Positions 6,986 to 62,006 of a stretch of 64,000 bases of DNA are shown one piece after another. The stretch comes from Marsupella aquatica (taxonomy: Eukaryota; Plantae; Marchantiophyta), in the NCBI GenBank assembly GCA_973895155.1, contig OZ316898.1:19479292-19543291 (forward strand), in the 5' to 3' direction. Position numbers and translations under genes: made by a program. The notes under the pieces were generated by a model. It saw nothing but the letters and a program-made list of their open reading frames with translations. It was not told the origin of the DNA and searched no databases. The stretch's first letter is position 1; each line of letters opens with the position of its first letter.

Positions 6986-8239
6986 TCAAGACACAGGTGT
7001 GAGAACAGGTTTGCCAGAAAAGTGGGAACTAAGGTTCGCGACAACAAGTTCTGCCATAGCCTCTGATGTCTCCCATGTATCAGTCCCAACATGTGGGAGC
7101 AACACAACATTATCCATATTGAGCAACCCTTCTGGGACATGAGGCTCTCTGTCAAACACATCCAAGCCTGCTCCCGCCAGACGACCTTCCACCAACGCTT
7201 GCACCAATTCTCTTTCATCCACCACAAGGCCTCTGGCAACATTCACAAGGTACCCTTTCGGGCCCAAGGCATCCAGTATTTCACGATTTATGATTTTGGT
7301 CGTTTCCTCCGTCAAAGCACATGCAACTACAAGAACATCAGAATCCGTTGCAAGCTCTATTATGCTGCCAAAATACTTGTAGGCTAGCCCTTTCTTTTCT
7401 GATCTACTCCAATATCCAATCCTGCAGTCAAATGCTTCGGCTCTTCTGGCAATAGCTGATCCAATCCTACCGAGGCCCACTATCCCAAGTCTCTTGCCAC
7501 TAACCTGCAAGCAAATCATGACAGCCGGAGCTTCACATGAGTTTTCTATTTCGCTTGCTTTCAATTTAAGCGTCCGAGAAATAGTAAACGGATCAACATT
7601 TCTGGGCCCACTCTGAAATCCGAAGATAACTATACTTTGGATGGAGCTATCTCTGGAATCGGGTCTCTGTTTCGAATTCACGTGTACGTGGAATTACACG
7701 CTTCAGGCGCTGTGCTAAGTAATTCATGCTTGGAGGTCGAGTTTACGAGAAACCTAATTTAGACAACTGACAGACCGGAAGAAGCAGAGAGCCAGGATCT
7801 GACCACATACCTTGGTAGTCAGAGGAAAGGGCTGAACTGGCCATTCACCTTCTCTCACAAATCGGTCTGCAGCGCAGATGCGTCTCAAGGTGGTGAGCAG
7901 TAGAGCCATGGCAGTGTCTGCTACAGCATCTGTGAGCACGTCGGGAGTGTTGGTGACGACCACACCACGCTGTTTGCAGAATTGAAGGTCTATTTTATCC
8001 ACTCCCACGCTGAAGGACGCAACGATCTCCAAGTTTGGCAGCATGCTTACCAGATCCTTAGTCACCGAGCTCGATGCGTCAGTCACAATTCCTCGTATGG
8101 ATGGTCCTCTCTGGGTGAGAAACACCTCTTTCTCTGGCACTCTCCACCATTGATGGTAGGTGTACATGGACTGCAGCGTTGCGCAGAGTGGTGGGTACTG
8201 TTCAGGAGAGCATAAATCTAGCACTGCCGGTTTTGCCAT
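6986..8239 (-). CDS. HPPR: Hydroxyphenylpyruvate reductase / glyoxylate-hydroxypyruvate reductase (D-2-hydroxyacid dehydrogenase), 2 exons, about 315 aa
   Basis: Exon 1 8239-7811, GT-AG intron, exon 2 7504-6986. Motifs [34 protein letters not shown] (NAD binding), [22 protein letters not shown]. Confidence 0.93.
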
Positions 8240-11696: not shown

Positions 11697-11989
11697 CCTA
11701 GCTCCTCCTCCTCACGCCAGTCGCAGCTTCGACTCGACGATTTGAAGACTGATTACACTACAGCTTCGCCGATTGAAAGAGTGGAAGTACTTCTGCCTGG
11801 CTTGCAGGCTGTCACTAACTCTGTAATCACTCTTCCAATGGCTGAAATGCTCAAGAGCGAAAGCCAGAACAACTTCGACGATTGAAGAAGTGGAAGTACT
11901 CAGAAGGAGTTGAGTGACTGACACAGATTTATACTCAGGAAGAGCACGCTCCGTCTCGCACCGATCTCCCGTCCAGAAGATACTGCGTA

Positions 11990-12645
11990 GCTGAAATTTG
12001 GGAGGGATCAATCGATCGGCGACACCATCCGAGCATGACTCACTCTCGTTCATCCTGGACAACTTGAGGATCGACTCTTCCGAGCAAGACTCACTCCTGT
12101 TCGTCCGGGACACTGAAATTAAGGAGGGATCAATCAACTGGCGACACCATCCGAGCAAGACTCACTCTCGTTCGTCCTGGAGAACTTGAGGATCGACTCA
12201 TCCGAGATTCTCGTTCGTCCGGGACATGTTGAGGATCGACTCACGGTTTCTTCCTTTCAAGCCCACAACTACTAATCATTATGTTCCAACGATACTCAGG
12301 TCATTGGTTGAACTTGTGATAGGCTCCAAAAATGGCCGCCTGAATTTGGGAGGGATCAGTCGATCGGCGACACCATCCGAGCAAGACCCACTGACACTCG
12401 TTCATCCTGGACAACTGGAGGATCGACTCATCCGAGCAAGACTCACTCTCGTTCGTCCGGGACACTAAAATCAAGGAGGGATCAATCGACTGGCGACACC
12501 ATCCGAGCAACTCACTCTCGTTCGTCCTGGACAATTTGAGGATCGACTCACGGTTTCTTCCTTTCAAGCCCACAACTACTAATCAAAATATTTCAACGAT
12601 ACTCAGATCATCGGTTGAACTTGTGATAGGCTCCAAAAATGGCCC
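11990..12645. repeat. Nested tandem duplication array
   Basis: GGAGGGATCAATCGA.CGGCGACACCATCCGAGCA...TTGAGGATCGACTC subunits arranged in two larger units of about 310-350 bp, each ending GTTGAACTTGTGATAGGCTCCAAAAATGGCC. Confidence 0.85.
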
Positions 12646-13097
12646 CTTGATTTGATGTAGTGGCGTCCTGTGTAAACATCCCCCTTCTAAGACAGCTATT
12701 CATAATTTGACTAATTCCATCTACTTTGTCATGTATTTTTAGAATTTAGGCATTACTGCAACCCTTTTAGTTTTTTCATTTTCTTTTATCAGACTCCCTA
12801 ATTATACGTGTATTTAACAATTTAAGGGCATTCTTTCTTACTTGCATGAGAAGGTTAGACCCCTCAACGACGCACCTTATATGTCCATAGATTATAAAGT
12901 TTGCAAAGTATGGATCATCAGGTGTCACCTAAATAGAGAGCCCGTACAAATAGGGCAGAAAATTTAAAAGTAACAGAGGTAATCAATTTCTCTTTGAATC
13001 TATGTATACACTCATTGACTAGTACTGTTCAAATAATGCCCTTGTCTCACCCATAAAATATTGTAACTTTCTTCTTTTTCGAACTTAAAGCCTGGAT

Positions 13098-13273
13098 GGA
13101 CTGGCAGGTTGTCCATGAAGCCCCCATGGATAAAAGAAACTTGAATGGAAGGGGCTAAAACATATAAATATGCATGGATACTATTGGACTGGCAGGTTGT
13201 CCATGAAGCCCCCATGGATAAAAGAAACTTGAATGGACGGGGCTAAAACATATAAATATGCATGGATACTATT
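13098..13273. repeat. Near-perfect 88-bp tandem duplication
   Basis: GGACTGGCAGGTTGTCCATGAAGCCCCCATGG...GCATGGATACTATT occurs twice. Confidence 0.9.
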
Positions 13274-13699
13274 CTTTACTTTTCTGTCCATACAAAACAG
13301 TGTCAATGATCAAAGCATCGCTTCTGTCCAAAGATTTTCCCCGTCACTAACTCTGTCCTCACTGATGTCTTAAAGATATTTTGTCAGAGGTCAGAGCACT
13401 TTAATTGAATGCTTCGCTCCATTCCCTAAATAGAGTTCAATAAAAATATAAAGTATATTTAGGTCCTTATATAAATACTTGATTTGGCCTCTATGCTTTA
13501 TCAAACTTCGAGTATGAGTGCTTCACTTTTTACTCATAGTGCCTCAAGTAATTTGCTCAATGGTAAAATACCAAATGAACTTAATTTACTCCAAAAAATA
13601 ATTTAATGTTTATAAGCCCGGTTAAAAGGGAATCAAGTAACACAGTGACTCATTAACCAAAGGAACAATTCTGGTTAATTGTAACGTGCGAGCAAATAG

Positions 13700-13970
13700 T
13701 AAAATTTTTCCTCGCACGAGCAAAAAAAATTCCTGCATGACCCCTATTTTTCTACATGCAATTGCCTCACTATCAACTACCTGGCTGGTAACATCTCTTT
13801 TGGGGACTCCCTTTTTGCTAGCGAGCTCGCTAGCCATCTGCAGCCTTTAAAAAACACCAAAATGTAAAAGGCACCAAAAAGCAACTGAAAATTGGAACCA
13901 TTATGGTCTCGCTATCAAAATCTCCTCACTATCAAAATCTCTTGTTTGCTCGCAACATAGAATACCTCAA
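13700..13970. repeat. Dispersed repeat homologous to 31075-31350
   Basis: Shared TTCCTCGCA.GAG...CATGACCC...CTCGCTAGCCAT...AAAAACACCAAA...AAAAGGCA; contains the palindrome GCTAGCGAGCTCGCTAGC. Confidence 0.7.
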
Positions 13971-14409
13971 CAATTCTCACCAAGGAGGCTATGGGGCAAA
14001 TCTAAGGCAAAAATAATCTCAATTTTTACAATGGATTCATATTTTTCTACACATTTGTTAAAGATTCTAGGGCATTGACACTTTGCGTAATGACTATACT
14101 ACTTTCAGAAATGCTTTTACATAATCTTGTAGTTTATATAACATTGCTCTTGTTACCGGGATTGAAGGAAGTTTTTCATTGTTTAATAAGCAGTTGTTGA
14201 ATATTATTTTTGACAGACCATTCATTGTTCTTGTTGTAAATAATGTTTTGACTAATTTATTGCTATAGTGCTATTTGAGATTTTTTGGGGGAGTATTGTT
14301 AATGAATCCTATTTTTTAGAGAGCGCTGCTCTTGTTACAAGGACATCTGGAAAATGGGGTGGAGAATATTCATCAAATAATCATCAATGAAATTGACTGT
14401 GCGGGGTAC

Positions 14410-15235
14410 GATATTGACCAAGTAATGTGTCATTGCTTATTACACGCTGACATGTCATTGTTGAATTTACAATGTTTACTCATTGATTCATTGTTTTGTA
14501 TTTTTTTAAAATTGATTCATCAATTATCCATTGTATGATCAAGATTGATTCAATTTCAAAATAATAAACAAAGAATTTGCATTGATTCATCATTGGACTA
14601 GCATGTTGAATTAGCAATATATCAATGCCACATTAGTGTGTAATCATTGTGTTTTCATTGTGTAAAAGCCATATTTTCATTGAAGGATCATTCATGTTTC
14701 ATTGGTTATTCATTATCACTTCATTGACAAATCATTGTCCTTTCATCATGAACCTATATCATTTGTCCATTGTCATTCGGTCAATATTGATTCAATACCA
14801 TTCCATTGATCCATCATCATGATTTCCATGATATTGTATCATGAGTTTATCATTATTCCATCATCTGTTAAATTGTCATTTCAGTGCCATTTCATTGTGA
14901 CATTGGTCACCATTTGGTCCTCATTAAACAACTGTGTTTTTGTAGTTGATTTGTTGTTAGTTCAACATAGTTTTCAGAATATCACCAGTGTGATTTATTT
15001 GTCATTTTTTCATCACAGACTCTTTTTCAGTTCCTCGTTGAATCTATGTCAATTTAATGTCATTTCATTAGCATTTCAATATGATTTTCTCATTATCATT
15101 TCCTTGTATTTGCATTGTCATCTTATTGGTGAGAAGTTGTCATTCCATTGTTATTTCATCAATCTTCCTTAAGCTCATCAATGTTGTTGACTGAGACAAT
15201 GATTTGTTGTTGATGCATCACAACTATCATTGAAT
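14410..15235. repeat. Degenerate CATTG/TCAT-rich low-complexity tract
   Basis: Dense CATTG/ATCAT words and almost no CpG; the reverse-complement bias occurs at 25680-26350. Confidence 0.5.
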
Positions 15236-17554
15236 AGATAATTTTTGGGGGGTATCCCAATTTTTCTAATTTGAACACACTTTCGCAACCTATTTCAAAA
15301 GCTTTCACTGTAAATGTTTCCAATGAACTTTTGATCAAGATGCAAAAGAAATTTGAGCTATGTAGTCAAATATTCGTCTCCATATTAAAGGTCGACTAGA
15401 GCTAGAGTTATCAAAGTTTTAACAAATATGTTACCGCTGGATTCCAATCATAATGACAGTTTGTCCTAGAGAATCATAAGAGAACTTTCCTAATTTAAGA
15501 TTTAACTTCGGCTAGTCCAGAGCTCTAAATCTTGGGAGAAGACTTGTTTTTCTGGTGCTTGCCGACCTATCCTGCCACTCTCTTCATACATGTGAACCAG
15601 CGCAGAGCCCACACGCAAATCCGAGCGATCCCATCTTCAGACACATTGACCACTCTTTTCTCGGCACTCATCCACCTGGCTACATTGCATGACTTCTGCA
15701 AGAATCTTCTCTCACCTGGATTCGGATACCATTCATCTCGCCCCGTTAAAATAATTTAAAATATGGCATGACAAGACCAGAAAAAGTGCGAAGGCAACCA
15801 TAATTCTCGAAGATCCATCACGGAAAATGTTGTCGTAGTATGTAACTTCCACCAAACAAGGAACAACAGAGCACACCAACAAGCAATGACGTGCCTTGTC
15901 TGCAAGAAACCGTGCCTGGGGTCACGGGGCGGCCGAGTCCCCATCCACACGCACCGATTGCGAGCAACTGATGTTCATTGACGACACTCCCTGCTCCCTC
16001 CCCGCCACCCTCCCTGCCTCCTGCTACCACTGCTTCAGCAAATTCTTCAAATCACTCATCCATCTCTCCCCCTGCCCGCAATCCCGCACCGCATCCCTTC
16101 TTTCCATTCCTACTTGTCTTCTACTCTGCACTACGCGTCCTCCTCCAACAAACATACGGTGGGACCGAGAAACTGTTTCGGAGTCCGGATAACTTGCAAA
16201 AGTTAAATGACTCCTTTCCAACTGAGAGTAACGGCTATCTATGAAGAATGCAATGATCTTAGAATAGAATATTGAAATAATTGTGAAAGGCATATCCAGG
16301 TATCAAGAAGCTCGTTCCTTCTCCCGTATTTCACTGTACCCACAGAAAGTACAGAGTCAAGAGCCTATCAAATTGGTACTAAAATACTTCAGCCAGAAGT
16401 CACATGTTATCCTTGGGTTGTGTAAAGGACAGACTCTTAGGGCATTCATTTGTAAGTTGCCTACACTGTCCTTTCTGCGCTATACACAAACCAGAATCTC
16501 AGGTTTCTGAAAAGAGACTACTTAGAAATAAAGCCTAGCCATCATCTGTACAATCCATCGTGATTAGACACAGATGAAATGAACGTGAAAGCGCTTCCCT
16601 CCCTCTCCTACAATTCAGAAATAGTGGCTATCCATCATTCTTAAACTTGGCTCTTATACAATCCGTGAAGAGACACATACGACATGAATGTAATAGCCTC
16701 CCCTCCCCTCCCCTCCCCTCCCCTCCCGCCCCGCCCGCGCGCCCCCCCCCCCCCGACCCACCCTGTGCTTCCTAACACGGAAAAGGAATCAAACTTGAAG
16801 TCCAACTCAAGTCTTGATCACATAAGCCTCATAGCAGGAAATTCCCACAACTATAAATGTCACACCGTGGTGCTGGAACAATAGTTTCTGTTTAGAAGTA
16901 GGTACGCATAACGTTGAAATCGCTCTTCAGTCTCATTACCTGAAGGCCGTGTACAAGAACAATGGCGGATGCCAATACCAATCAAACCGGAAGATGAAGG
17001 ATAAACTCTGCAAATCAAACGTCTTTGTTGAGAATGTATTCAAGGTCGTTTGGTCACATCAAATCCAACAAAATGACATTCATACAAAATTAATCATACC
17101 TGGCTGAGGGCTGTTGCCTAAAGCGGTCCATATCCAAAGTTCCATCGAGTCAGCTCCGTTCCCGTGCCGGGAATACGGAGCTCAATGGTACAGTTTTGAG
17201 AAATACGATCTTACCTGTTTGACAAAGGTTCAAATCAGTCTAAGTAGTGCAATCTTGCAGACCCCTCAAATTTCAAGTCTCATCTTTCCTTCCCATGGAC
17301 TAAGGAAAGAATATTCATTACGCGAAGGCTCTGTTGGGGAAACCTTGCCCGGGCAGAGGAATCTAAGCTCAGCGTAACAGTTGGAGGAAGCCCTAGAAGC
17401 ATAGCAGTAGCGGTATCTTCTCCAGGATCAATTCCTCCTGCTGGACTCTTTTACGAATCATCCCAGCTTTGCCATCAAAACTTGAGAATCAAAACTACAA
17501 GTTTTGAGAAGAAAAACTATGAGAAGATCTTCCAGCCAAACCCCAAAGCAACCC

Positions 17555-33067: not shown

Positions 33068-34168
33068 ATGGGGCTCAAGCATGGGAGAAAGCCCGAAACA
33101 TTCCTCGTCGGATTTTTACCTCTACTTCTTTGGTCAGTGGCTCGGATCATTATTGTAGCTGAAGCTGCAGCGGGCGCAGGCTTGGAGCTGTTGAGCCCGG
33201 CGCCATGTTCCTTCAGGGATCCACTGTCGGATCCAATTCACGAAATGCATCATGGACACGACGTCGTATGGCAAATTCCGTCCGACCGCAAAGCTGTCCT
33301 GCTCTTCGCACACGGATATGGCACGGACGCGTTCGTATACTTCGCTCCAGGACCCAACTGTGAGCAATGCTATGGATTGCCTGAACATCGGACCGTAGTC
33401 CTGGAAGCTCTCCGGCGACGGTATGCTGTCATAGTAGTGTCGGTCGATGCCGCAGATATGGAAGGCGCCGACGCGGCCATTGTGTATACCGTCGTTAAGG
33501 AGTGGATGGCAGAGCACATGTTGGACAGCCTGCCCTTGGCGGTGTGGGGTCATGCTTCAGGGACCTATCTCGCGACGGCTCTAACCCTGAGCCTTCCAAT
33601 ACAGGCGATGGTGCTCATGTGTGGCGAAGGGATCTTCGAAGTGGAAGAGGTGGCGACCCCGCTAAGTTTTCCACCAACGATCTTCGCGTACATGCCTGTT
33701 GATGAATCCGATCGATTCTTGAACCACACAGGAAAGGCCAAAACAGCGATGGCGGTCCTCAGCTTGCTTGGAGTGGAAGTGGCTTACACAGAGCTTTGGC
33801 CGAAGCCGCTTTCCCCGCTCTTCTTCACGGAGCGCATTCTGTGCATGAGCGAGGAGGTGTCACGGGCGATCTATGCGGCTTATGAAGCTGCTGGATGGAT
33901 AGGCGCCAATGGGTATCTCACGAGAGACCCAAGCCAGGAGGACTGGCAATCCGTGTTACTGAATGCTAAAGCGCTGCCCTTATGCCCGTTTGGGAATCTT
34001 TGCCTAGGTGCTCAAGTGGAGCAGGAGCTGAAGATGGCATTCGCTATGCATTCGTTCACGAGCGATGGTAATGGCGTGATTTTTCCTTGGCTGGACTCGA
34101 CCATTAGCTCTTCTTCTAGTGCTGAAGCATCAATTCTTGAATCTCCCGCACTCACTGCAACGATTTGA
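33068..34168 (+). CDS. Secreted alpha/beta-hydrolase-fold protein (plant uncharacterised family), 366 aa, intronless
   Basis: Intact ORF with hydrophobic N-terminus; DVVWQIPSDRKAVLLFAHG, CEQCYGLPEHR.VVLEAL, WGHASGT, FPPTIFAYMPVD, AMHSFTS; close paralog of 28342-29457. Confidence 0.85.
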   Translation: MGLKHGRKPETFLVGFLPLLLWSVARIIIVAEAAAGAGLELLSPAPCSFRDPLSDPIHEMHHGHDVVWQIPSDRKAVLLFAHGYGTDAFVYFAPGPNCEQCYGLPEHRTVVLEALRRRYAVIVVSVDAADMEGADAAIVYTVVKEWMAEHMLDSLPLAVWGHASGTYLATALTLSLPIQAMVLMCGEGIFEVEEVATPLSFPPTIFAYMPVDESDRFLNHTGKAKTAMAVLSLLGVEVAYTELWPKPLSPLFFTERILCMSEEVSRAIYAAYEAAGWIGANGYLTRDPSQEDWQSVLLNAKALPLCPFGNLCLGAQVEQELKMAFAMHSFTSDGNGVIFPWLDSTISSSSSAEASILESPALTATI

Positions 34169-38947: not shown

Positions 38948-41769
38948 GCATAAACAGGTTTGACCCCTAAACAGACGTCATGGATGTTCCACTTGAGAAC
39001 AGCCAAGTTTCACTTACAGATTAGTTACTACAGAAGATGACTGTGTACTATTATCCAATCACACTATTGCAGTGGTCTTCTTCACCTATCATTTGCTTAG
39101 TCTGGAGTTTGCATCACCCCTCTTCATTTTGGTTTGGTGTTTGACTCCTTGGACCTCTTTCGCTTTTATTCTATAGTACTTTGTTTGGCCCTCTTTTACC
39201 TGCCGAGAAATTTGGATTGTAGAGTGCATATTGGCAAAAAGCAATCGTCTGCTACCAGCTCTAGCTCGGGAATGATACATACTTCTCCTTCAATCAAGCA
39301 ACTTGAAGGTGAACAAAAAGAAATACAGAAACATCCCAATGGAGGAAAGAAAACAGGGGAGAATCAGTGCACCCAAAGTACACTTGATCCCGCACTTGAT
39401 GCCAAATCAGATATCAGAATACACTCACCTTCTTGCCACTCTTTTTTTAAAGAGATATATTTTCATTCTTTTTAGTGTAATTATTATTCTGCAATGTTTT
39501 CACTGCTTGTTAAGCAAAGTAACTTGAGTTGGCTTGTAACGATTGAGAGTCACTGTGAAATGGTCATCCATCTCCTCATCTTAGTTACCCAACACCCTTT
39601 CTAACCCTTAATGTTGGGTAGGGTCTCTTCCCTTTCCCACTTTCCCCTACCCCAAACCGCTCTGCCCTCTCCTGCATTGATTGCTTGACTCCCCTCGGCC
39701 CCTGACCGAGGGGGTGGACAAGGGGAAATGACGTGAGCCATATGAGTACAAGTAGCAGTATTACATTGCTAACTAAATGACATTGCTTGTTCATTGCTGG
39801 AACTGTAACATTGTAGTAAATATACTAGTCTAAGAATTAGTGGCAAAGTCTTACTAATAAAGCGCAATGCAAAGTTACTTTCATGTGCTACTGTCTATGT
39901 AGACGTAACTCTCAATAGGACAAAACTGAAAAGTGAAGGTGGACAAAACTGAAAAAGGGATAGGAGCAAAAATTAACCAAGTGACATTGACTCTAAATAT
40001 GGACAAAACAAAGAGTGACTCTCAATAGAAGTGAGGGTGAAAAAAAGAAGAAGGATGGAGGCAATGATGAACACCAGCATTGCTTGGCAAGAAATGTTTT
40101 TGTCTTCATCTCTATTTTCTTTCAAAGAACGGGTAATAAGGATAGTATAACAAAAAAATTAAGAATGGCGTCGAAGTAAATCTTAGTAATTTAGGATACC
40201 CACCTTACTAATATGATGCAGGCCCGTTGCTGGAATGCTTGGGCTTGCTCATTGGCAAGTTCCCTTTGAAAATTATAATAATTTCAATTGATGTAGACTG
40301 GAAGATAATGTAATTAATCCGTGGACCCCAATGTTATTTTAGAGTCAATTATCTAGAAACTGAAGCAAAGGGGCCAATTTAAAAACACTAAAAAGGAGAC
40401 TTGTCCATTTTTTGGAAATTTTTTCTTTAGAGGATGATTTATTTTCTAGTTTGAATATAATTATAATGTAAATAAAACGGTAGTAGGAGCAGTTTAACTT
40501 CAATCTTTTCATCTTTTGATTTTCATGTCAGTTTTTTACATTCTCTTTTATGGCATGGTGTCCCAATTTTTACAAAGAAGTTGCCACAAACACGAATGCA
40601 GAAGTTCATTTTATCCCAAAACAAATCTCTTTGTGTTTGGAGCATGTCATGATGATGTGGCAAGTTGTGGAGCCAGGAATTTGGAAAGGACCCCTAATGG
40701 GGGTCCCTAAATACGACTTGGAGAGAATAATATACTTTTTGACGAAAATAATAAATGAAGAAATAGTGTCCCGCCTCTTGTTTTTCTAATGCCCCAAATA
40801 CACTACACTGCAACGACAACTCCAATCATAGATTGGGAGGACCCACTAATTGATGGCACTTTGTAGGGTTGTTTGGCAAGCTGACATCGAGATTTTAGTT
40901 CCTTTTGACTACCTTGCCAACTGACGATGGCACTTTATGCTTGGATGGGTGTACATTCGCCTCTCTGGCACGTTCTAGGAAAGAAGCATCTGGTGTGTAC
41001 TTTAACAAGGGTTTGTACTAAGTCTGAAGAGCAGTGACTTGAAAATTTGCATTTATGACAAAAACATACAATCATGCCACTACATGCAACATTTTGGGCC
41101 CTATTTGAGTCCTAATTTTGGTGACTTCTTTCCTAAATGGCACATCCCTGTCCAAAATGTGGTCCCCTCCTTAATCAGGGTAATTTCTACTCTATGTAAA
41201 CATAAAAAACACTTATTAATAAGGTAGTTGAAGGAAATTGCCCAGGTAATTCATGAGCTTATTCATAAGTGTTCATACAAGCATAGGAGTTTGCATTTAT
41301 GTACATGAGGTTTAGTGCAGCCCTCTTGCACTTAAAAAAAATACAAAGAAGTGCAAAATGGTCAAGGGGGAAAGGGAAGAAATGCATCCCTTCGAATTAG
41401 CCAGGGTTTTCAATTATGGATATTGCACTTTAGACAAGTGGACACCATGATGAGCTGACATTTGAAATTTTAGTCGTGGTCAAGTTGTATGCCACTTTTT
41501 CATACAGAATCAACTACAGTAGTAATCATGAACTGTATCCACTATACAGTCTGTTGGGCAAGTTGGGTGTCTGGTAGGGCCACTTTGGGATGTCATGAAC
41601 GGTGGTCCTTAATTAAGGACCCTGGATTAGATATATGGGCAGGTCTGTGGCTCAGTCCCTATCGTCCCACCGACCCAATGACGTATCAATGAACAGGTGC
41701 AAACCTCTATACCCCGGTTTGGACTTGTCGGACAAATAGACAAATTTACGAAGACAAATGACAAATGTC

Positions 41770-42200
41770 GTCCCGGTCGATCCCGGTCGGGTGACAAGGC
41801 TGGGCCGGGAGAAAATCGAGCCGGGACCGGGAAGGGAGGGAAAGGAGGTAACCCCGGGCCGGGAATGGTGGGAGCCCCGGTCCGGGCCGGGACGGGAAAA
41901 TGGCCGGGAAGGAGGGAGCCCCGGGCCGGGAAGGAAATGAAAACGGAAAGCCGGGAAGGAGGGAGCCCTCGGGCCGGGCCGGGAGGCAAACCGGGCCGGG
42001 AGGGGGGGACCGGGCCGGGGAGGGGTGGGTGGGGCGAGCCGGGCCGGGAGGGGTGGGAGGGGTGGGTGGGGTGGGCCGGGGAGGCGCGGGAGGCGAGCCG
42101 GGGCGGGGATTAGGGTTTCCCTCCTTAGGGTTTCAATTAGGGTGCGGCCGGGAGCTTAGGGAGCCGGGAGCCGGGAGGTGAGGCGAGGCGGGAGCCGGGG
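41770..42200 (+). repeat. Left GC-rich subterminal array (GGGCCGGGA/CCGG motifs)
   Basis: Dozens of CCGG/GCCGGG words, G-rich on the plus strand. Confidence 0.85.
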
Positions 42201-42314
42201 GGCATAAAAGGTGGAAGAGGAGGTGAGGAGAGGTCATTGTGTGTGGAGGAGTGGAGGAGGAGTGGAGGAGGAGTGGAGGAGTGGTGGAGGAGGAGTGTGG
42301 AGGAGTATAGAGGT
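42111..42314 (+). promoter_or_regulatory. Putative left-arm promoter and leader exon of the hAT element
   Basis: Telo-boxes TAGGGTTT (42111, 42126), CATAAAAG (42203-42210), GGA-rich leader, donor AG|GTAAG at 42313 followed by a T-rich intron-like tract; mirrored on the right arm. Confidence 0.55.
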
Positions 42315-43205
42315 AAGATTTTTTGAGTTTTATGTTTTGTTATGGTTTATGCTTTTATTTATGTTTTGATTTTTGTTATAATGGATGTTTTGATTTTTGT
42401 TTTGTTTTATATTATGATGTAAATTTTGATTTTTGTTTTGAATGTATATATATTGTTTTGAATGTATGTATGTAATTTTGGAATATATGAATATAATTTT
42501 GGAATAAATGTATGTATTTTGTTTATATGGTGTATGTTGTTTGTGTTTTGATTATGTGCTAATTCTAAAATCTAAAATTTTGTTTGTACCCTAAACCTAA
42601 AACCATAAACAAGCCCTAAACCATAAAACAAGCCCTAAACCATAAAAAAAATGAATTTTAGATTAATGGAGAGATATAAAGAGATTCCTGTGCGCGCGTG
42701 TTTAGAGCTTCGGCTCAGCATGGGATATTTCGTACAAAAGTCTTTTAATATCACCTTAACAATTTATCATTATTTGCAAATTGAGTGAAAGATTTTTGGA
42801 GATAGAGAAACCCATGTACGCAAGCTTGGAGCTTTGTCTCGGCATGTGATATTTTACATGGGTGTCACGATTCTTCGAAATTCTTTTCACTCAATTGGTA
42901 AATGATTGATAAATTATAGCTATCACATAGATCCAAGTAGGAATGTCGGAACTGTGAAAGAAAAGAAAACTTTTGTGCACGTGCTTGGAGCTTAGGCTCG
43001 GCATGGGATAATTCACAAATGTGTTCTCCCTTCTTTTATCGTTATGACATTCAAAAGATTAATAAAAATAAATTGCAATCAAATCCAGAAACAATAATCT
43101 AGTGCGTAATAATCACGTGAATCCGTGATTCTCAGGGTATATGTGGACAGTTGATTGAGTGGGTAAGGTTGTACTCATCTCACACACCATTCTTGTGAAG
43201 CCACA

Positions 43206-45341
43206 ATGGACTCGACTAGTCGAGTAGAATACAGGCAGTTGCTAGAAACGATTACTAGGGTTCTTGATGAGGGGGCTGAACCGGATCATGTGGCCCTCCA
43301 AGCACTCAGGAATGCACGAAATACTCTTGAGTATAAACCAATTGCTGGCAAACTCAGTGGGAAGAAGAAACGAAGAGGGGGCAATGTTGAGGTGAAACAG
43401 GTTCGCTTTAATACAGTAGTGGCGATCTGGAAAGGAATATTACATCGTTACACTCAACCTAAGCAATATGAGGAGAATGTGTTCGAAATGGATTTTACAA
43501 GGCACGGTCTAAAAGGATACAAGAAGTTTGTGAACGAGATCACTTGTTGTATGCGTGAAAGTGTAGAGGATGAAGACACTTTCACACGGGAACAGAAGGA
43601 TGCATTTGTACTTGAGTGTGAGAAAGCAGGAGGATTCATTGACAACTTGGCTGTCAATTTGGAGTTCAATATTTGGGATTTGATGGTGGCCAAATTAAAC
43701 TTGGATGATACTACAATGCTTGGAAATCCTGGAATGTTTAAGCACAAGAGGGACTTGTTATCAACTTGGAGTAAAGAGTTGGCAATGGCAAAAGCTGAAA
43801 GTAACGTCAAATATGTAAACAAGGTGATGCAGTTTGGAGATGTGAGTATCAGAAGCGATGGAAAAGGAACACGCCCATCACGTGTACTTCCGGATGTGAG
43901 GAGTATCCATTTCTTGAAGCCTGAGCAAGTGCAAAATGCTCATTCCATCGGGAAAGGTGTGCAAGGGGAGGTGTACCCTTGTCACGTATTAGATTGCCCT
44001 CTTATTCCGAAGAATGTCACACTAGTGGCAAAAAGATTCAAAAAAGGAGATAAGCAAAAGAGGAGGACAGATGCACTACAAGAAATGCTTATGGGAGGAC
44101 TAAATCACAAAAGAATTGTTGGGGCTTTGGCAATGACGATTGATGATCCACCAAGACTTGTGTATGATCATTACAATGGAGGTGATTTGGGAGGCTTCAT
44201 AGATAGATGTGGATTGTGGTCAAAGAACAAAGGGAAATCACAAGGTTCCTCCAACATTGATTTCAAGTTTGTTTCTGAAAAGAAACTCTTTCTGGAGAAT
44301 CTATTGGGAATTGCGTTGGCGCTGCTTGAGACGTTACAATATTTGCATGATCACAACCGATGTCATTGTGATCTTCACTTTGGAAATGTTCTTCTACATT
44401 TTGACTATGAAGATGATGTAGCCATCAAGGTGTATGTTGGCTTATGCAATTTTGGCTTGTCCAAACATAAGTCACAGTGCAGACTACCAGAGAATCGAAT
44501 GTGGTCTACTCCTGCAGATAAAGTTGTAGCCTATCAAAAACAATATCCTCAATTGGCTCCAGAGCTTGTTTCACCCACCCCCGGGTATGCAACTCCCCTT
44601 TTTATAAATCAAGTTTTTAATTCCTTATAATGACCCTATATCCTTAGACCATCTTAGATTTCATTTTAGTTTACTAAATTCTTGTACCTCTCAACTCAAG
44701 GAATCCAAAAATATAACTTAAAAAAAATTCTGAATATGTTTTGATGTATAAAAAGTTGATCAAAACTAGATTATATGACTTTTTTTTAATACAGGGGTCT
44801 ACAACCAAACTAGCCAGCTTTTTAGGATTTTTATTAAAATTTTAAAAATCTTTTAATAAAAACTACAACATGTATAGGGATATTTTTTAATTTCATATGG
44901 AAAAAGAAGAGAACCAAACCTTTTATATGACTTGAAAAATTTTTAAAGTGGAAAACCCAGCTTTTTTCAAATTTAAATAATTTTGTATAGCCAACTTTTT
45001 AGTCCATATAAAAATGTAGACCCCTGCCTATTATACAAGAGTTGCGTACCCGGGTGCCCACCCCAGTAGAGTATAGTGCTGCCACTGATATATATGTTTT
45101 GGGCAACATTTTTTAGAGTCTCTTTTTAGAGAATTGGGATGGAGCGTCCATGAGGACACGGTGGTTGGGTAGGGGTTGGAATACCTTGGAGCATGGTCCT
45201 AACTTGGAAGCAATGGTCCATGATATGATGTCCACCGAGGTGAAGAAAAGGCAAGAGTGTGCCTTTTGGAGTTTGAAGATAGTTCAGACATTCCCGGATT
45301 GTAGACTATTTGCCCAAAATAGTCCTTATCTTAGAGATTAG
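43206..45341 (+). pseudogene. Transposon-borne protein kinase with about 230-aa unknown N-terminal region, interrupted by a MITE
   Basis: IGKGVQGEVY (G-loop), LVAKRF, DALQE, HCDLHFGNVLL, CNFGLSK, QLAPEL. After removing 44580-45054 and one TSD the frame continues PTPVEYSAATDIYVLG (subdomain IX), TAG at 45114-45116, then MVHDMMSTEVKKR (XI) to the stop at 45341. Confidence 0.88.
44580..45054. mobile_element. 475-bp hAT-type MITE nested in the kinase gene
   Basis: 16-bp TIRs CCCGGGTATGCAACTC / GAGTTGCGTACCCGGG; 8-bp TSD CACCCACC (44572-44579) / TGCCCACC (45055-45062); AT-rich interior; homologs at 58667-59153 and 61533-62006. Confidence 0.92.
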
Positions 45342-45509
45342 AGATGAAACTTGACCCTCTAATTATTACATGAAGTCATTAAGTTATACACAATCAAATG
45401 GTTATTATAAAGTGATATGTATCTTATTTGTTTATATTGTTATGCCATGCCATTTCATGATATTTGGATTTGTTCTAAATATGTTTTTATGTTTGTAGAT
45501 CTTGCAATC

Positions 45510-47467
45510 ATGACGAAATGGAATTTGGATTCTGATGATGATGAAAAAGTTCCAAAAGACAAATATGCTCATTTATACATGCAAGACGCTCAAGATGCTT
45601 ATTACGATCACTTTGATCATGATATTCATGGAAACTCGCTATCTCCAACAAAAGGGTTGGAAGATGAGTCTGAACCCAATGCTTGTGACATTGGTACGGG
45701 CGACAAAAACTCCTTGCCAAATTCAACTAAGTTGGAGGATGAAAGTATCGATTTGGAGTGGAACATCACAATAGAAAATGTGAAATCTCCTCATCATGAA
45801 TGGCCGATCAACGCCAAAGAATTGGAGATTTTGATGCCCAAAGCAGAGTTTGGCAAATTTGTGAAAAAGCTATTTGACGATCCAGAAATGTGGACAACAA
45901 AATCTTGGTTACAGGATAAATTTACGATGTCTAGGCTAACACATCGAGATGCCGCCACACATTGGCAACAAAGATTTTGGGAATATGCTCCAAATAAGGC
46001 AAACGGGAAAGTTAGTTCTGCTTATCCTCCTTTTGTTCGATGTTTGATTGTCGAGTTCATTCTAAAATGGAAGGTGGATTATCATTGGGAAAACAACGAT
46101 GGCAAGGTGACCCATTCTGTGCATAAATCAGTGCATGCTATTGCAGCAAACAGAGGCAAAAGTGTAAAGAAGGATGTTCCAACCATGACCTCTAACAAGG
46201 GGTCCAAAAGAAAAATGGATGAGGCGCAGAAGGTGAATACACAACCAAAGGAGAAAGCAACATTTATCTCGCAATTCCTTGTGAAGCCTGAGCCAGCAAC
46301 CACACCAAGCAATGTGGAGTCTACCAACAACAAAAGACCAAACATTTCAGGGATTGGAAGCAGAACTCCACCTGTAATCAATATCGAACCTCCTAACAAG
46401 GAGAGGCTCAGCATGCAACATGTATGCAAGAGCTTGGGAGCAGAGATTGGTGATTTGCTTGAGAAGAATCTTCGCACAAAGTATGCTATCGAGCTTTGTG
46501 ATTCTGGCAGCATGGAAAGATACAAGGCAAAACTACAAGAGACCGATTTGAAGATACGATCACTAGAGAAGAGGCCCATGGAATCGGGGACCAATTCTGA
46601 GGTGATGTACTACAAGGCTCAATTATTTGACCAAATGAAGAAAATCCAGAAGTTGACTGAACAACTTTCCAACAAAGAAGGTCAAGCTAGTCAAGTGCTA
46701 GAACTTGAAAAGAAGAACAAAATCATCAAAGATCTTCAAAATCAGCTTGCATCTCAACAACTCATCATTACAAATTTGCACGAGGAGATAACCAATGTCA
46801 ACAATGGTGATTTGGGATGTGAGTCAAAAAAAGAAACATCCTCCGATTTTGTTCAAATGCAAATCATTGATCCTACAGGACACAACACCCTATTTTCCTG
46901 ATGTGGAGGCTAGTGCAGAAGGCATTGAGAAATATTTTGACAAGTGGAAGAAGGATGAAACTATGGCACCATTTGTTCGTGAAAAAGATGACAAGTGTAC
47001 TTGGTGCCTCTATCCTTGGGGCCCAGAATCTGTTTCCATGTTGGGAACTTGCGGACATATATGACATTGATCATGCTTGTTTGTTCAAATGGTTGAAGAA
47101 GAGCAGAAAATGTTGGTGTCGCACACCATTTCATGAACGTGAATATCAGCAACGAGGATTGTTGGACCAGATGCCATCAATGGAGACACAACAAGACACT
47201 AAAGAGACACAAGAGGGTCTAGTGATGACGCAAATAGATTCCACTCCCATTGAACACTTCACAATCAATGAGTATAATTTGTCAGATGGCAAATTTGACA
47301 GATTGCTCCTTAGTGGTCGATTCAATGAATGGAAAGAATATGCTGCAGCCAACCAGCCATCAATAGACGAGCAAAATATGCAACGATCTATTTGTCGCCA
47401 TCGACGACGTCAACAATAGGCAGAAGTGAAAGCAGAAGTTGTTGACATCAATGGAAAAAATGTTTGA
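45510..47467 (+). pseudogene. Transposon-borne protein with unknown N-terminal domain, coiled coil and RING-like zinc finger; frameshifted
   Basis: Long ORF 45417/45510-46901 with heptad-rich KAQLFDQMKKIQKLTEQL...IIKDLQNQLASQQLIITNLHEEI. Frameshift near 46890 into KCTWCLYPW...TCGH; frameshift near 47060 into DHACLFKWLKKSRKCWCRTPF; in-frame TAG at 47417-47419. Confidence 0.7.
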
Positions 47468-47902
47468 ATACAGTAGTCTCTAGATTTTCATGTAGTTACT
47501 ATTAGACACTTCTTTTTTCTTGGACGATTGTTTTCAAGTGTAATTGGTAAAGAAATAATGCAGTGGCATAATATATGACTTATCATGGAGTCACATTTTG
47601 GTGGAGCTCGTGTGTGATGTTTGTGGATTTACATTATAGATTATTTAACCATTTTTGTAGTATAAGTACCGTCAGAATTTAGGGTTTATCCCATGGGGAA
47701 TAAAGTTTAGACTAGGCACAAGGTAGATTTGAAATATCATTAAAAATGGATACAAATATCTGGTCCATAAACATTATTTTGCAAATCGTGACACTTATAA
47801 AACTCAATAACTTATATTCATGGCCAAAAAATATATGACATTCATTGTTATTGTCAGTAAAGACAATACAATAGTAACAAAGCATGCTAAACATAACATT
47901 TC

Positions 47903-50846
47903 TCAAGGCTGTGAAAGAAAATTCCTAGTGTTTTTGTTGTGATTTCGCTGCAAAGCTTGATTCCACTCTTCCTCTGCAGTCCATGCAACTGGGTCGCGAT
48001 TTTGCGGATGGACATTCCTTTGAGCTTGTTGAAATGATGATGTTCTTTGAAATTCACGATCAATAGGATTGTTGGATGTATATGGATTAGTCACAGTCTG
48101 ACCTCCATACTCATTGAAGATTGTAACAACTTCTTCCCATGGTGCACGTGTGTTGTTCAAAGATGTACCTTGAACATTATTTGGTTGTTGAAAAATAGCT
48201 GATCGCTTCCCTCTGAATGATGTCCTTGTGCTAGTGTGTTGTTGAACAAAGTATGAGCTACTTGGGTCGACATTATTGTGGACGTTCAATGATGGATAAG
48301 CCCAAGATGCGTTTGGTTGGAAAGATGTTGCAAAATCTGAATACAACGATGCATGATCTTCATCTTCAATCTGCGACTTGTCAATTGTAGGATATATCTC
48401 GAAATCCATTTCATTCTCCCAATCACCTGCATCACTTACATCTGTATCTGGTGGAAGACGAGTTAAGAAGTCACCCTCTTTATGTAATGATAATCCTTCC
48501 AAGGCTTCATCCGCATCATCAATTGCATCAAAATCTTCAACATCTTCTTGACCAAGGGCGGCACACGTTGCATCACACCCTTCATTCTGAGTCTGCTCAG
48601 TGGATAATGGCCTGACACCGTCATTTGTTGCTCTTCTTTCCTCATAACGTTGATATATAAACGTATGAAGATTTCTTACTTTTGTAAGCCCTTTCTCCAC
48701 TCTCATGTTTGTGAATACAAACACTAAATCCTTTGCTCGATCATTTGTCAATCTGTTGCGACTTGCAGAATGAATAAATCCATAAGAACTCCAGTTTCTT
48801 TCACACGCAGATGCGCACATTTTTTGGTGACAGATTTTTCTAGCCAAAACTCTTAAATCTAGATAATCAGCACCGTATGAATGCCACCACTCTCCTGGAC
48901 TTACTTGACCTATACTAGATTGGGCTCCTCTCATGGTTACTGTTGTGTTTGGTAATTTCTTTTGCGCATCAATTGCTTGCAATTGTATGGCAAAAATGAG
49001 TGCATTAACCTCACGATCATGGTTGACCCCTTCCTTCACCTTGTGTTCGGCATATCGGGCAATGTACTCACTGAAACCTCGACATAGTTCTCCATCTCCA
49101 GCAACATCTAGGTCTTCATCAAAAACATTTGAGGATTGATATATGCTGCAGCTAGCATAAAATCGGTGGTAAGAGATTCTCTTCGATCCATGTACACTTT
49201 TAATATCCTTGGCTTCAAGAACTCTGTTACCAATGGACATTCCTCCATGCTTGCCTTCAAATCAGTAATCCCTCTTTTCAAACTCCAATACAACCAGGCT
49301 GACTGAGGTGAAGCACCATCAAATTCGCGAAGCATCTTCACCTATGGAAGAAAGAAGTTCACTGTAGCTTTCACATCAGCCCAAAATTTATCTTGTTGTA
49401 TCCACCCTTTCAGTTCTTCTGCCTTGGCCCTTGTCATGTGCCCATTTAATTTTGCACACATAGGAAGTCTATCACGATAAGACTCCCATTTATCATCAAT
49501 GACCATTTGTTGCAAAGCTTCTCTTAGCTCCAATGCTCTTTGCGCCATGAGAAAATTTGTTGCAAATCTTGTTGCATTTGGATTTAGTAGTTTTTGTAAG
49601 TCAATTTTCTCACAAATACTGCGGAGAGCTTTTGGGACGATGAAACTGCTTTTACTATCCATCTCAAGCGTTTAAAAATGTTTTTGAATGGATTCTGTCT
49701 ACTCTCATCTAGCACTACATTCTTATGACCGCACATGTCTTCTAGCAACAAATTGAACACGTGGGCAGCACACCAACTCCAAGTGACATGTGGATATTTT
49801 TTCATGACTATCTCACAACCTACTACACGATTTGTAGGCGCACCATCAGTTACAATTTGAACGATGTGATCTGGACCAATGTCATCGATATATTTCAGCC
49901 ACATCTCTCCAAGATATTTTCCATCTTTCCTATCAGCTTGTGCCGCATTCCAACTATCCAAGAAAAAATCACCTTTAGAAGTCAACAACATGACGTTCAT
50001 CAAAGGTTCCCTACGAATGTTTTCCCATCCATCTGATGAAACAGAATAACCAAAAGGTTTTGTTTCCTTCATGATTTTGGTGATGTCTTTTGTGAGATCT
50101 TCCTTGGCTTCCTCCAACAACTTCATTCGCAAATTCCGCATAATGGGAAGAGAATATCCATTTACAATACCTTTTGAAGTCTCATGTACTGCTTCTCGAA
50201 AGTAAGGATTCTGTGAAACATTGAATGCAATACCACTTGTGTAGAAAGCTTTTGCCCAAAGCTTGTCCAAATACGCTCTATGTGGAATTTGATAAGCATC
50301 CATAATCGGGTTTGAAAGACTTCCTGCCCGAGCCATATGAGTCATATTTGACTCATTTTCCATTTGAAAATGGTTAGACTCTCGTGTGGATGCTTGTGAA
50401 TGGGAAGTTCCAATCTCTGGCCTGCGACCCCTGACATCCCGCAAGATATGGGTTCCATCCCTTTGTTTGTAGTTGATGTTTGATGGAACTTTGATGACAT
50501 TGTACATTCTGTTGATTTCATCCAACTCCACATGACCATACAGGCCTAGGCATAGTGGTGCATTCCCTTTGATGATGTTTCCCATCAAATGTGCTTTGGC
50601 TCGTGTTGCATGAAAAGTAATATATGTTTTACAAAACTTGCATTTTCGATACATACGGTTTGCATCATTAGATGTTGAAGGCGCATCACACTGTTCGAAA
50701 TATTTCCACACCGTAGAAAATTTTGCACCATGCTCTCGCGAATGATTTGCTCCATGCCTAGGGATAGTGGAACGATATCCAGATTCACCGGACTCATTGT
50801 CATCGGAAAAAATCATTGAAAAGAAAGATGTACATGCAGAATTCAA
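47903..50846 (-). pseudogene. hAT transposase (BED finger, DUF659/RNase H-like DDE, hATC dimerisation), disrupted
   Basis: VWKYF...CKFC...AHL (BED); SSDGW, VTDG, WCAAHVFNLLLED, TRFATNF, WWHSYG, SACERNWSSYGFIHSASRNRL. Two frameshifts (near 49630 and 49130) and an in-frame TAG at 49342-49344. Confidence 0.93.
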
Positions 50847-51504
50847 ATTCTGTAGTGTACCGTCAATAAAATGACAGTGTCATCTCCTCTCCAACGCACA
50901 CTGAACATACATAAATACAACAATACAAAATAAATATTTATTGTATACCAAACTTCATATAGCATATACAATGAACCCCAAGAATAATCACATTTCACAA
51001 CATTTTGAGTTCCCTAAATTTTATCATAGTATTTTTGTTGTTTTTATGTTTGGTTGTAACAAGTATAAAAGAGTAGGACACTTTGATGAATTACCACAAT
51101 CTGAGTCGAGACTCCAAGATTACGCACCATCGTTTCCTGATCTCTCATACTTGCTTACATCCCTACTTCGTCCTAAGTTATAGAATATCTATAACTTAAC
51201 AATCACTTCTTTATAAAGCAGAAATATTTTCAGGGAAATCGTGACACACATGTGAAATATCACAGACTGAGCCAAAGCTCCAAGCCTACGCACATGGATT
51301 TCTCTATCCTTTGAAATTTTTTTGCTTACTAAATAAATGACGTTAAGTTGTTAAGTTAATATATAGAACTCTTGTATGAAATATCCCGAGCCGAGCCAAG
51401 ACTCCAGACCCGCGCATACAAAAATTCATATATATTACTCCATTACAATTCACTAAGGAAAAACATTTCATTGTAAGACTCTAAAATTGAGAAGTATTGC
51501 AAAA

Positions 51505-51680
51505 CTTACCCTTAGACCTTAGTAGCTTAGAGTTTCTCGTACTAAGTTGTGTGTACAATGATTGGGGGTCTCCCCTTTTATGGCCTCCCACAGACCTCTT
51601 TTTCCGTAGTTTTAGCCTTAACTTTTGGGTTGCACCCTTTTAACCCTAATTTTGGCCATCTCGCGGCCCCTAACCCTAAT
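51505..51680 (-). promoter_or_regulatory. Putative right-arm promoter and leader exon driving the transposase
   Basis: On the minus strand: TTAGGGTTA telo-like boxes (51641-51679), CATAAAAG (51575-51582), donor GTAAG at 51509. Confidence 0.55.
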
Positions 51681-51699
51681 CCCGGCCGCAAAGTAAATT

Positions 51700-52650
51700 A
51701 CCACCCGGCCCCTTCCCCCCGCCCCCGGCCTCCCTGCCCCCACCCCGGCCTTCCTCCTCTCCCCCTCCCCCCCGGCCTTCCTCCCCCCGGCCCGGTCTCC
51801 CTCCCCTCCCCACCCCCGGCTTCCCTCCCCTCTCCCCCCCGCCCCGGCCCCGGCCTTCCTCCTCTCCCACTGCCCCCCCCGCCCCGGCCTTCCTCCCCCC
51901 GGCCCGGCCTCCCTCCCCTCCCCACCCCCGGCTTCCCTCCTCTCCCCCTCCCCCCCGCCCCGGCCCGGCCTTCCTCCTCTCCCACTGCCCCCCCGCCCTG
52001 GCCTTCCTCCTCTCCCCCTCCTCCCCCCGCCCTGGCCTTCCTCCCCCGGCCCAGCCTCCCTCCCCTCCCCACCCCCGGCTTCCCTCCTCTCCCCCTCCCC
52101 CCGCCCCGGCCCGGCCTTCCTCCTCTCCCACTGCCCCCCCCGCCCCGGCCCGGCCTTCCTCCTCTCCCCCTCCTCCCCCCGCCCTGGCCTTCCTCCCCCC
52201 GGCCCGGCCTCCCTCCCCTCCCCAACCCCGCCTTCCCTCCTCTCCCCCTCCCTCCCCCGCCCCGGCCTTCCTCCTCTCCCCGGCCTTCCTCCCCCCGGCC
52301 CGGCCCGGCCTCCCTCCCCTCCCCACCCGGCTTCCCTCCCCTCTCGCCCCCGCCCCGGCCACCCACCCCGCGCCCCGGCCTCCCTGCCCCCGGCCTCCCT
52401 CCCCTCTCCTCCCCCCCGGCCCCGCCCCGCCCCCACCCAACCCCACCCCGCGCCCCAGCCTCCCTGCCCCCCGGCCACCCTCCCCTCTCCTCCCCCCCCG
52501 CCCCGGACCCGTTTCTCCCGTCCCTCCCCAACCCCCGGCCGGGCCGGGCTGGGGGGTTTTAGGACCTGGCCGGGAAGATTTTCGACCTGGGCGGGAGAGT
52601 GTGGTGCTCGGCCGGGAGGGGCCGGGAGAATTTGACACCGGGCCGGGGAA
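51700..52650 (-). repeat. Right GC-rich subterminal minisatellite (CCCGGCCTTCCTCCTCTCCC-type units)
   Basis: About 900 bp of almost pure C/T/G on the plus strand with repeated CCCGGCC; G-rich on the minus strand. Confidence 0.9.
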
Positions 52651-52986
52651 TATCAAAGAATATTGGACAAATAGAGGGTTTTTGGATGGACAAGTTGTCA
52701 TTTGTCATGTCGGACAAGGACACATCTTGTCCGACAGTGAAAACCGGGCTCTATACCTTATTTTAGCGTTGGTGAAGTAGTGACCAGGAAGCTACCCTTG
52801 AGAGATAGAAGGTCCATTCAAGGTACGTAAGCCCAAAATAGTAAAGGTAAAAATACTATGTAGTTATGGGCCCTTTGCACTTCGTTGGGTTTTGGGTTGT
52901 TTTATGCCCTCTGTTTGGTTTCCTGCCTTTGGGGTCTGCGTCCCTGTTTGACACTTTGTTCTTTTGCAGAGTGATATATGTATATA

Positions 52987-61532: not shown

Positions 61533-62006
61533 CCCCAGTATGCAACTCTTGTATAATCTGCAGGGTCTACATTTTTATATGGACTAAAAAATTGGCTATA
61601 CAAAATAATAAAATTTCAAAAGACCTGGGTTTTCTATTTATTAAAATTTTCAAGTCATGTAAAAGGTTTAGTTTTCTTCCTTTTCCATATGAAATTAAAA
61701 ATATTCCTACACATGATGGAATTTTTAGTAAAATATTTTTAAAATTTTAATAAATTTTTTGAAAAGCTGACTAGTTTGGCTATAGACCCCTATATAAAAA
61801 AAATCTCATATAATTTGGTTTTTATCAACTTTTAGTACATTAAAATATGTTTGGTTTTTCTTTTTAAGTTACATTTTTTGATTCCTTAGGTTGAGAGGTA
61901 CAAGACTTTAGAAGACTAAAATAAAATCTAAGATGGTCAATTGGATATATGACCATTATAAGAAATTAATAACTTGCCTTATAAAAAGGGGAGTTGCATA
62001 CCCGGG
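61533..62006. mobile_element. 474-bp hAT-type MITE with perfect 8-bp TSD
   Basis: TIRs CCCCAGTATGCAACTC / GAGTTGCATACCCGGG; TSD GAGGCAGC at 61525-61532 and 62007-62014; opposite orientation to the kinase-nested copy. Confidence 0.92.

Follow-up and report, generated by a model that had tools for sequence, protein, structure and literature searches.

Does a long hAT transposon of the liverwort Marsupella aquatica carry protein genes that belong to it, or has one decayed copy picked up foreign sequence? The question is raised by a stretch of 64,000 nt of contig OZ316898.1 (assembly GCA_973895155.1, positions 19,479,292 to 19,543,291 of the forward strand), hereafter the window, in which a first-pass annotation had proposed an 11-kb hAT element encoding a transposase, a protein kinase and a coiled-coil/RING protein, the latter two as a dedicated module of the element. 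That interpretation is largely supported. The locus holds a full-length, dead member of a multi-copy hAT family of liverwort-type genomes, and the layout of this family runs from a terminal repeat through a CCGGG-rich array, three to five hairpins and two genes without introns, one for the kinase and one for the coiled-coil/RING-H2 protein, to a converging transposase gene with a mirror-image arm. The two cargo genes have been under purifying selection, as judged from open frames and from approximate substitution ratios. Taken as a whole, the structural and evolutionary reading is considered probable; the functional part of it is far less certain.

Ends and genes of the element

The element occupies 41713-52748 of the window (11,036 bp). 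It begins with the terminal inverted repeat (TIR) CCCGGTTT at 41713-41720 (+ strand) and ends at 52741-52748 (− strand) with the reverse complement, which reads AAACCGGG on the + strand. Only these eight terminal bases form a perfect inverted repeat, and a shared GTCGGACAA lies about 14 bases in. Immediately outside are the two copies of the 8-bp target-site duplication (no strand assigned), CTCTATAC, read in the sequence at 41705-41712 and matched perfectly at 52749-52756, so that the TIRs and duplication proposed in the first-pass annotation proved exact in their coordinates. An exact 8 + 8 match at both borders of a symmetric structure is unlikely to arise by chance (about 1e-3 by our own estimate, allowing a few kb of freedom on each side). 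The same terminus starts at position 51 of a related metagenome contig, L002 (CCCGGTTTTG), and, with one change, at position 8240 of L001 from Calypogeia fissa (CCCAGTTTGAC), in both cases exactly at the onset of homology to the window element, and these matches lend independent support to the placement of the ends. A 674-bp contig from a second organism runs across the left junction, differing from the window at seven positions and in seven small gaps, and the insertion is therefore common to two organisms.

The two arms begin with degenerate tandem arrays that are dense in CCGGG/CCCGG. The left array (41713-42330, + strand) is G-rich, with 31 sites in 618 bp, and the right array (51691-52748, − strand) is its C-rich mirror, with 44 sites in 1059 bp, against six sites in the 9.4-kb interior. 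Since the core repeated in both arrays is also the core of the terminal repeat, the arrays are likely candidates for transposase-binding regions, and the left arm is likely to be a candidate CpG-rich promoter as well.

Three genes lie between the arms, two on the + strand converging on one on the − strand. The latter, at 47903-50816, is a hAT transposase pseudogene identified from Pfam matches and alignment to relatives, and would encode about 945 amino acids if intact. Its ORFs (open reading frames) match DUF659 (PF04937, 107 bits, cut-off 34.7) and the hAT C-terminal dimerisation domain, hATC (PF05699, 36 bits, cut-off 21.4). The 8-bp duplication, the short TIRs and these two domains place the element among the hATs, with a terminal sequence that lies off the common hAT consensus. 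Most of the three-gene layout given in the first-pass annotation held, namely the DUF659/hATC transposase, the kinase, the coiled-coil/RING gene and their convergence. The BED domain that it listed had no Pfam match at E <= 0.1, a CxxC...H...H motif being visible in the transposase translation, and the kinase domain that it called complete is so in the window copy only when read through a 475-bp insertion and one stop codon. Its remark that this copy is decayed was borne out by the stop codons, frameshifts and miniature inverted-repeat transposable element (MITE) found in the three genes (see later).

The kinase pseudogene (43206-45341, + strand; recognised from Pfam and from alignment to intact relatives) specifies an N-terminal helical domain followed by a TKL-like kinase domain. 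PF07714 is matched with 54 bits in the window ORF 43206-44630, and with 54-63 bits across this copy and its relatives (cut-off 23.1). Intact kinases of the family keep the glycine loop (GKGVQGEV), the lysine (VAKxF), the helix-C glutamate, HCDLHFGN (HxD...N), DFG and APE. Their N-terminal region is about 230 residues long, and within it residues 63-199 of protein P0098 were modelled as helical with a predicted local distance difference test score (pLDDT) of about 80-90, the equivalent being found in P0008. A profile of the family matched solved kinases weakly (best E-value 4.5e-8; DDR1/2, Kit and Roco4), a phmmer search with one kinase against the PDB gave no match at 1e-5, and the kinase model, itself poor, aligned best to TKL-type kinases and pseudokinases (Z 8-11). 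The fold is thus predicted to be closest to that of TKL kinases. Among 5.8 billion clusters the kinase ORF matched only 11 proteins, two of them from the liverwort C. fissa.

Downstream of it, the coiled-coil/RING-H2 pseudogene (45510-47419, + strand; delimited by alignment to intact relatives) encodes, in order, a conserved N-terminal domain with no assigned fold, a KRK-rich stretch, a long coiled coil, the RING-H2 finger and a conserved helical tail. In intact relatives the finger reads CxxC, 14 residues, CxHxxHxxC, 10 residues, CxC, which gives eight ligands of the C3H2C3 type, the last pair being CxC and not CxxC. The window copy of this gene had no Pfam match. A profile search over 1.84 billion representatives returned about 20 fragments of the family and then ordinary zf-RING_2 proteins that matched in the finger only. 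A word-based search that took the intact RING protein as its query returned nothing but that protein, and Foldseek with the RING model gave no match at E <= 0.001 and only weak RING rows. On this sequence evidence, the kinase is a real member of its superfamily and the RING protein very probably so, and both lack close cellular relatives.

Related loci and the structured arms

Eight further loci (L001-L008) were obtained by retrieving the contigs of proteins that match the kinase. In six of them the kinase gene is followed by the RING gene, as in the window. Both genes are intact in L003, from a Logan run (636 and 624 amino acids), where the tail of a converging transposase follows, and in L007, from a metagenome (553 and 640 amino acids). 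The metagenome locus L002 has an intact kinase of 540 amino acids and a RING protein of at least 645 amino acids at the contig end, and L008, from a Logan run, has a kinase of at least 460 amino acids at the contig start and an intact RING protein of 632; neither contig reaches the transposase. The remaining two, L001 and L006, come from C. fissa, are 95.7% identical to each other and have decayed kinase and RING genes, with a decayed transposase gene in L001 and one with a single frameshift in L006. In L001, L003 and L006 the transposase lies beyond the RING gene and converges on it. The right end of L001 was not found, and the transposase-side end of L006 reads CCGGGTTTGAG, an assignment that is insecure without its partner end. 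Both C. fissa copies also contain about 4 kb of extra, rearranged and apparently noncoding DNA between the RING and transposase genes (L001 13230-17223, L006 12867-17120), where the window has 330 bp.

The two other loci combine the kinase with a different partner. On the 4.5-kb metagenome contig L004, a kinase of 455 amino acids is followed at 2587-4480 by a partly broken DUF6729-domain ORF in place of the RING gene, and no transposase is seen. In L005, from C. fissa, the kinase is decayed, the DUF6729 ORF, likewise partly broken, lies at 11855-15696 and there is no transposase within 10 kb; the ends of this element were looked for and not found. The 487-aa ORF of the DUF6729 partner gave no usable match in the protein atlas.

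Protein identity to the window copy falls from 67% (kinase) and 50% (RING) in L008 through 65% and 52% in L001, 52% and 39% in L007, and 51% and 39% in L002 to 48% and 31% in L003, the RING values being computed against the main window ORF, 45417-46901. The ranking is nearly parallel for the two proteins, which indicates that their genes diverged together. Intact ORFs of 540-640 amino acids are kept in copies whose proteins are only 30-67% identical to those of the window copy. Pairwise ratios of nonsynonymous to synonymous substitution (dN/dS, NG86) are 0.13-0.32 for the kinase and 0.10-0.48 for RING; dS exceeds 1 and is saturated, and the ratios are rough. The open frames of 540-640 codons in such diverged copies lead to the same conclusion. 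In all relatives both cargo genes are intronless.

Several expectations of the first-pass annotation can be compared with these loci. It had suggested a search for further copies, and with the kinase-RING order present in six more loci the cargo is not confined to the window copy; the purifying selection it looked for is seen in the intact, diverged ORFs and in dN/dS of about 0.1-0.5. Its view that the cargo is unlike any recognised host gene agrees with full-length, intronless genes whose products have no close relative outside the family. The alternative it raised, that the kinase/RING block is an independent nested insertion, finds no termini belonging to that block, and the hairpin array on the kinase side is the same as the one on the transposase side. 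On its question of whether cargo homologs occur only beside hAT transposases, a converging transposase is present in L001, L003 and L006 and none is visible in L004 and L005, with their DUF6729 partner.

The arrays just mentioned lie between the CCGGG-rich sequence and the nearest gene in each arm. The left array (42670-43053, + strand, sense to the kinase gene) consists of three units at 42670-42771, 42794-42894 and 42953-43053, and the right array (51049-51439, − strand, sense to the transposase gene) of three units at 51049-51149, 51215-51315 and 51339-51439. Each unit holds a hairpin of about 60 nt, and arms of the family carry three to five copies. A noncoding block of 100-170 bp per arm is kept at 70-78%, while the coding DNA of the same loci is 65-77% identical. 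The most conserved parts of the hairpin are the apical stem-loop, often with a loop of the C(UUCG)G type, and a 6-nt bulge, and individual units have folding energies of −19 to −28 kcal/mol. Rfam contained no family for the hairpins, the only row being MIR8007 below threshold (E 0.24).

Applied to 12 units, RNAalifold gave a structure of 22 pairs, 13 of which show compensatory changes. In this structure 94.7% of cells are paired, compared with 85.4% in shuffles (0/500 reached the observed value) and 22-52% with slid partners. A covariance model of the 12 units had 31 matches at E <= 0.1 in 153 kb searched on both strands, 17 of them beyond the training units. Each of the 29 matches with E <0.01 is located 5' of a kinase or transposase gene, in the same orientation as that gene; the remaining two are weak antisense echoes in L006. 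In an alignment of 27 units, which was fitted to the covariance model and so is biased towards structure, 17/22 pairs vary in a compensatory way and pairing extends to 94% of cells (82% in shuffles, 24-52% in slid controls). Cells with G-U pairs number 45 on the sense strand and 4 on the antisense strand, a bias that points to RNA rather than DNA.

A role at the DNA level would make the hairpins protein-binding palindromes or cruciforms for the transposase, or small palindromic repeats without an RNA role. Their location in the arms of a DNA transposon, inverted between the arms as transposase-binding repeats are, is what such a role would predict. It is nonetheless judged unlikely, since the compensatory changes preserve pairing and not sequence, the G-U excess is on the strand with the same sense as the gene downstream, and the units sit well interior to the CCGGG-rich subterminal arrays, at distances of about 1-1.3 kb (left) and 1.3-1.7 kb (right) from the ends of the element. 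The hairpin is a well-supported new structured element, and its reading as RNA is preferred. In the GC-rich arm of L002, a TATA-like box (TATATAAGGG) occurs within 330-420 with GTAAGT about 70 bp later, so the hairpins may sit in a leader intron or a long 5' untranslated region of the kinase transcript.

Decay of the window copy

Alignment of intact relatives to the window located the lesions of this copy, in which all three genes are broken, by four stop codons and four frameshifts in total. In the kinase gene there is a TAG stop at 45114-45116, the 475-bp insertion at 44582-45056 splits the gene, and the two together cut off the C-lobe; the DFG motif of the family reads NFG here (44445-44456). 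The RING gene has frameshifts near 46893 and 47075 and TGA stops at 47062-47064 and 47068-47070, both within the finger. In the transposase gene there are 1-nt deletions near 49593 and 49120 and a TAG stop at 49344-49342, where L006 reads TTG. Introns were considered for the transposase and rejected, the breaks being these deletions and this stop. Contigs of other copies have G at 47064, which restores Trp, and one base fewer at 46893, indicating that those two lesions are private to the window copy.

Public contigs hold hundreds of pieces of the element at 90-99% identity, and the family is therefore multi-copy, which argues for past transposition. The differences between copies are mainly transitions, and decay of this kind would fit a methylated, silenced element. 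The stretch 46873-47270 was considered as a separate repeat on account of its high contig depth and rejected; it is the most conserved part, and the depth is best explained by diverged copies that still pass the 90% threshold there.

What splits the kinase gene is a nested, AT-rich MITE of 475 bp (44582-45056, no strand assigned), whose inverted ends are of the CCCGGGTATGCAACTC type and whose 8-bp duplication is CCCACCCC. The window has a second copy of it at 61536-62003. In contigs of three public runs, 44571 is followed directly by 45055, or 44577 by 45067, and the MITE is therefore absent from other copies of the element. These features also led to the rejection of an intron as the explanation of the AT-rich gap in the kinase. 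The MITE family is about 470 bp long and its contig depth is 5-20 times that of the surrounding element, which marks it as high-copy. Its terminus resembles the CCCGG start of the large element, and it may be a non-autonomous hAT relative. Two other ORFs of the window are ordinary and host-type: a D-2-hydroxyacid dehydrogenase NAD-binding domain at 6986-7681 (−) and a weak alpha/beta-hydrolase match at 33068-34168 (+).

Possible functions and known systems

In the mechanism proposed here, the element would move by ordinary hAT cut-and-paste, leaving the 8-bp duplication, with the transposase probably binding the CCGGG repeats. The two arms would serve as promoters and leaders of two convergent transcription units, and the hairpins would act as RNA in both leaders, whether as sites for one regulator that couples the units, through an effect on translation or stability, or as a source of small RNAs. 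The kinase and the predicted nuclear RING protein would act on host proteins, for example by phosphorylation-linked ubiquitination of a silencing or repair factor. The window copy would have been silenced, have decayed mainly by transitions, and have been hit by the MITE.

That the kinase and RING protein act on host proteins in the element's favour is offered as a tentative suggestion, a serious one that falls somewhat short of being probable. Host targets are favoured by analogy, with viral sets of a RING protein plus kinases and with VANC of the VANDAL elements (PMC5735166). A more elaborate version would see a parasite toolkit, in which the kinase and nuclear RING E3 ligase target a silencing or repair factor of the host for removal, the RNA array shared by the leaders couples expression or yields small RNAs, and the hairpin-kinase cassette is exchangeable between backbones (RING/hAT and DUF6729); this combination is speculative and rather improbable.

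The same pair of proteins could instead control the element's own transposase, through its activity, localisation or turnover. The three genes are co-inherited, and both units have the same leader hairpins, suggesting coupled control. Such self-directed action is regarded as unlikely, and action on host proteins remains the preferred, if tentative, reading.

A number of observations weigh against the overall interpretation. In L004 and L005 a large DUF6729 ORF comes after the hairpins and kinase and no hAT transposase is visible, and in L007 exons of an SNF2-family ATPase (SNF2-rel_dom, Helicase_C) lie at 4825-7427 on the + strand, directly after the intact pair; the SNF2 gene may belong to the flanking host DNA or represent another variant of the cargo. 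With such neighbours the three-gene layout is not universal, and the kinase module may be more mobile than a fixed hAT accessory. A three-gene copy with all genes intact was not recovered among the loci, the best transposase, that of L006, having one frameshift. The saturation of dS has been noted above. The termini begin with CCCGG and not with the usual (C/T)A(A/G)NG, hAT termini generally having a start of the CA or TA type. Most kinases of the family have His after HxD in place of the usual Lys/Arg. Intact RING relatives match four to seven RING models, all below the Pfam gathering scores (zf-RING_2 and zf-rbx1 at about 22 bits, E 1.5e-4, against cut-offs of 27-31), and the AlphaFold models are poor, with a mean pLDDT of 55-59.

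Two readings of the exceptional loci remain: either the family spawns derivatives or a hairpin-kinase cassette moves between backbones. Carried to its conclusion, the second would make the hairpins, kinase and partner gene a separate mobile or recombining module joined to different backbones, and not an integral hAT accessory, as the DUF6729 loci without a hAT transposase within reach and the SNF2 exons of L007 might suggest. Against this, the window shows neither termini nor a target duplication peculiar to the block; the transposase is preceded by the same hairpin array, which makes both arms parts of one design; three loci share the hAT layout; the ends of L005 were not found; and RING-partnered and DUF6729-partnered kinases do not form separate groups in the star-like kinase tree. 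A separate module is accordingly held to be quite improbable, and the genes are taken as integral to the hAT family. Neutral drift of captured host sequences (Pack-type transduplication), which would accord with the frequency of host-sequence capture by DNA transposons (PMC2528002) and with the breakage of all three genes in the window copy, is largely refuted and very improbable, as the genes are full-length, intronless and intact in highly diverged copies with dN/dS well below 1, have no close homologue or parent outside the family, and conserve their order and orientation.

The value of the locus lies in the features of its family, the window locus itself being a dead copy. If the reading is true, with a selected kinase and RING pair and covarying hairpins, hAT joins those DNA transposons that have accessory functions, probably directed at the host, and bryophyte genetics gains a specific candidate for a system by which a transposon counters host defence. 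One parallel is with herpesviruses, nuclear parasites that use a RING ligase, the E3 protein ICP0, and protein kinases against host defences. For their US3 and UL13 kinases see PMC4482649. The likeness is a functional analogy with a virus, with no sequence relationship, and is a lead rather than evidence.

Among DNA transposons, Mutator-like and CACTA elements with ULP proteases likewise keep a host-type enzyme domain (PMC2528002), but this is a single protease domain in other superfamilies, without a kinase, RING protein or hairpin arrays. En/Spm (TnpA and TnpD) and PIF/Harbinger (with the Myb-like ORF1) also encode more than one conserved protein (PMC2528002, PMC13547354); their second proteins bind DNA and belong to the transposition machinery, whereas the extra proteins here are a kinase and a RING E3-like enzyme pair. 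The VANDAL Mutator elements, with VANB and VANC, are alike in keeping accessory genes thought to act on the host (PMC5735166, PMC13547354), and differ in superfamily and in having unrelated proteins. The words hAT, kinase and RING do not occur in PMC13547354, a 2026 atlas of Arabidopsis transposon products, and in the literature searched no hAT element carrying a kinase or RING gene is described, the coverage being partial and no proof of absence.

hAT elements have been treated as single-gene transposons. The present family shares with the canonical plant hATs Ac/Ds, Tam3, Tag1 and Tip100 the 8-bp duplication, the short TIRs, the subterminal repeat arrays and a transposase with DUF659 and hATC. 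It differs from them in its length of 11 kb rather than about 3-5 kb, in its CCCGG termini, in two extra conserved protein genes, and in the hairpin arrays of both arms, which are new here, as is the pairing of the kinase with a DUF6729 gene in some relatives.

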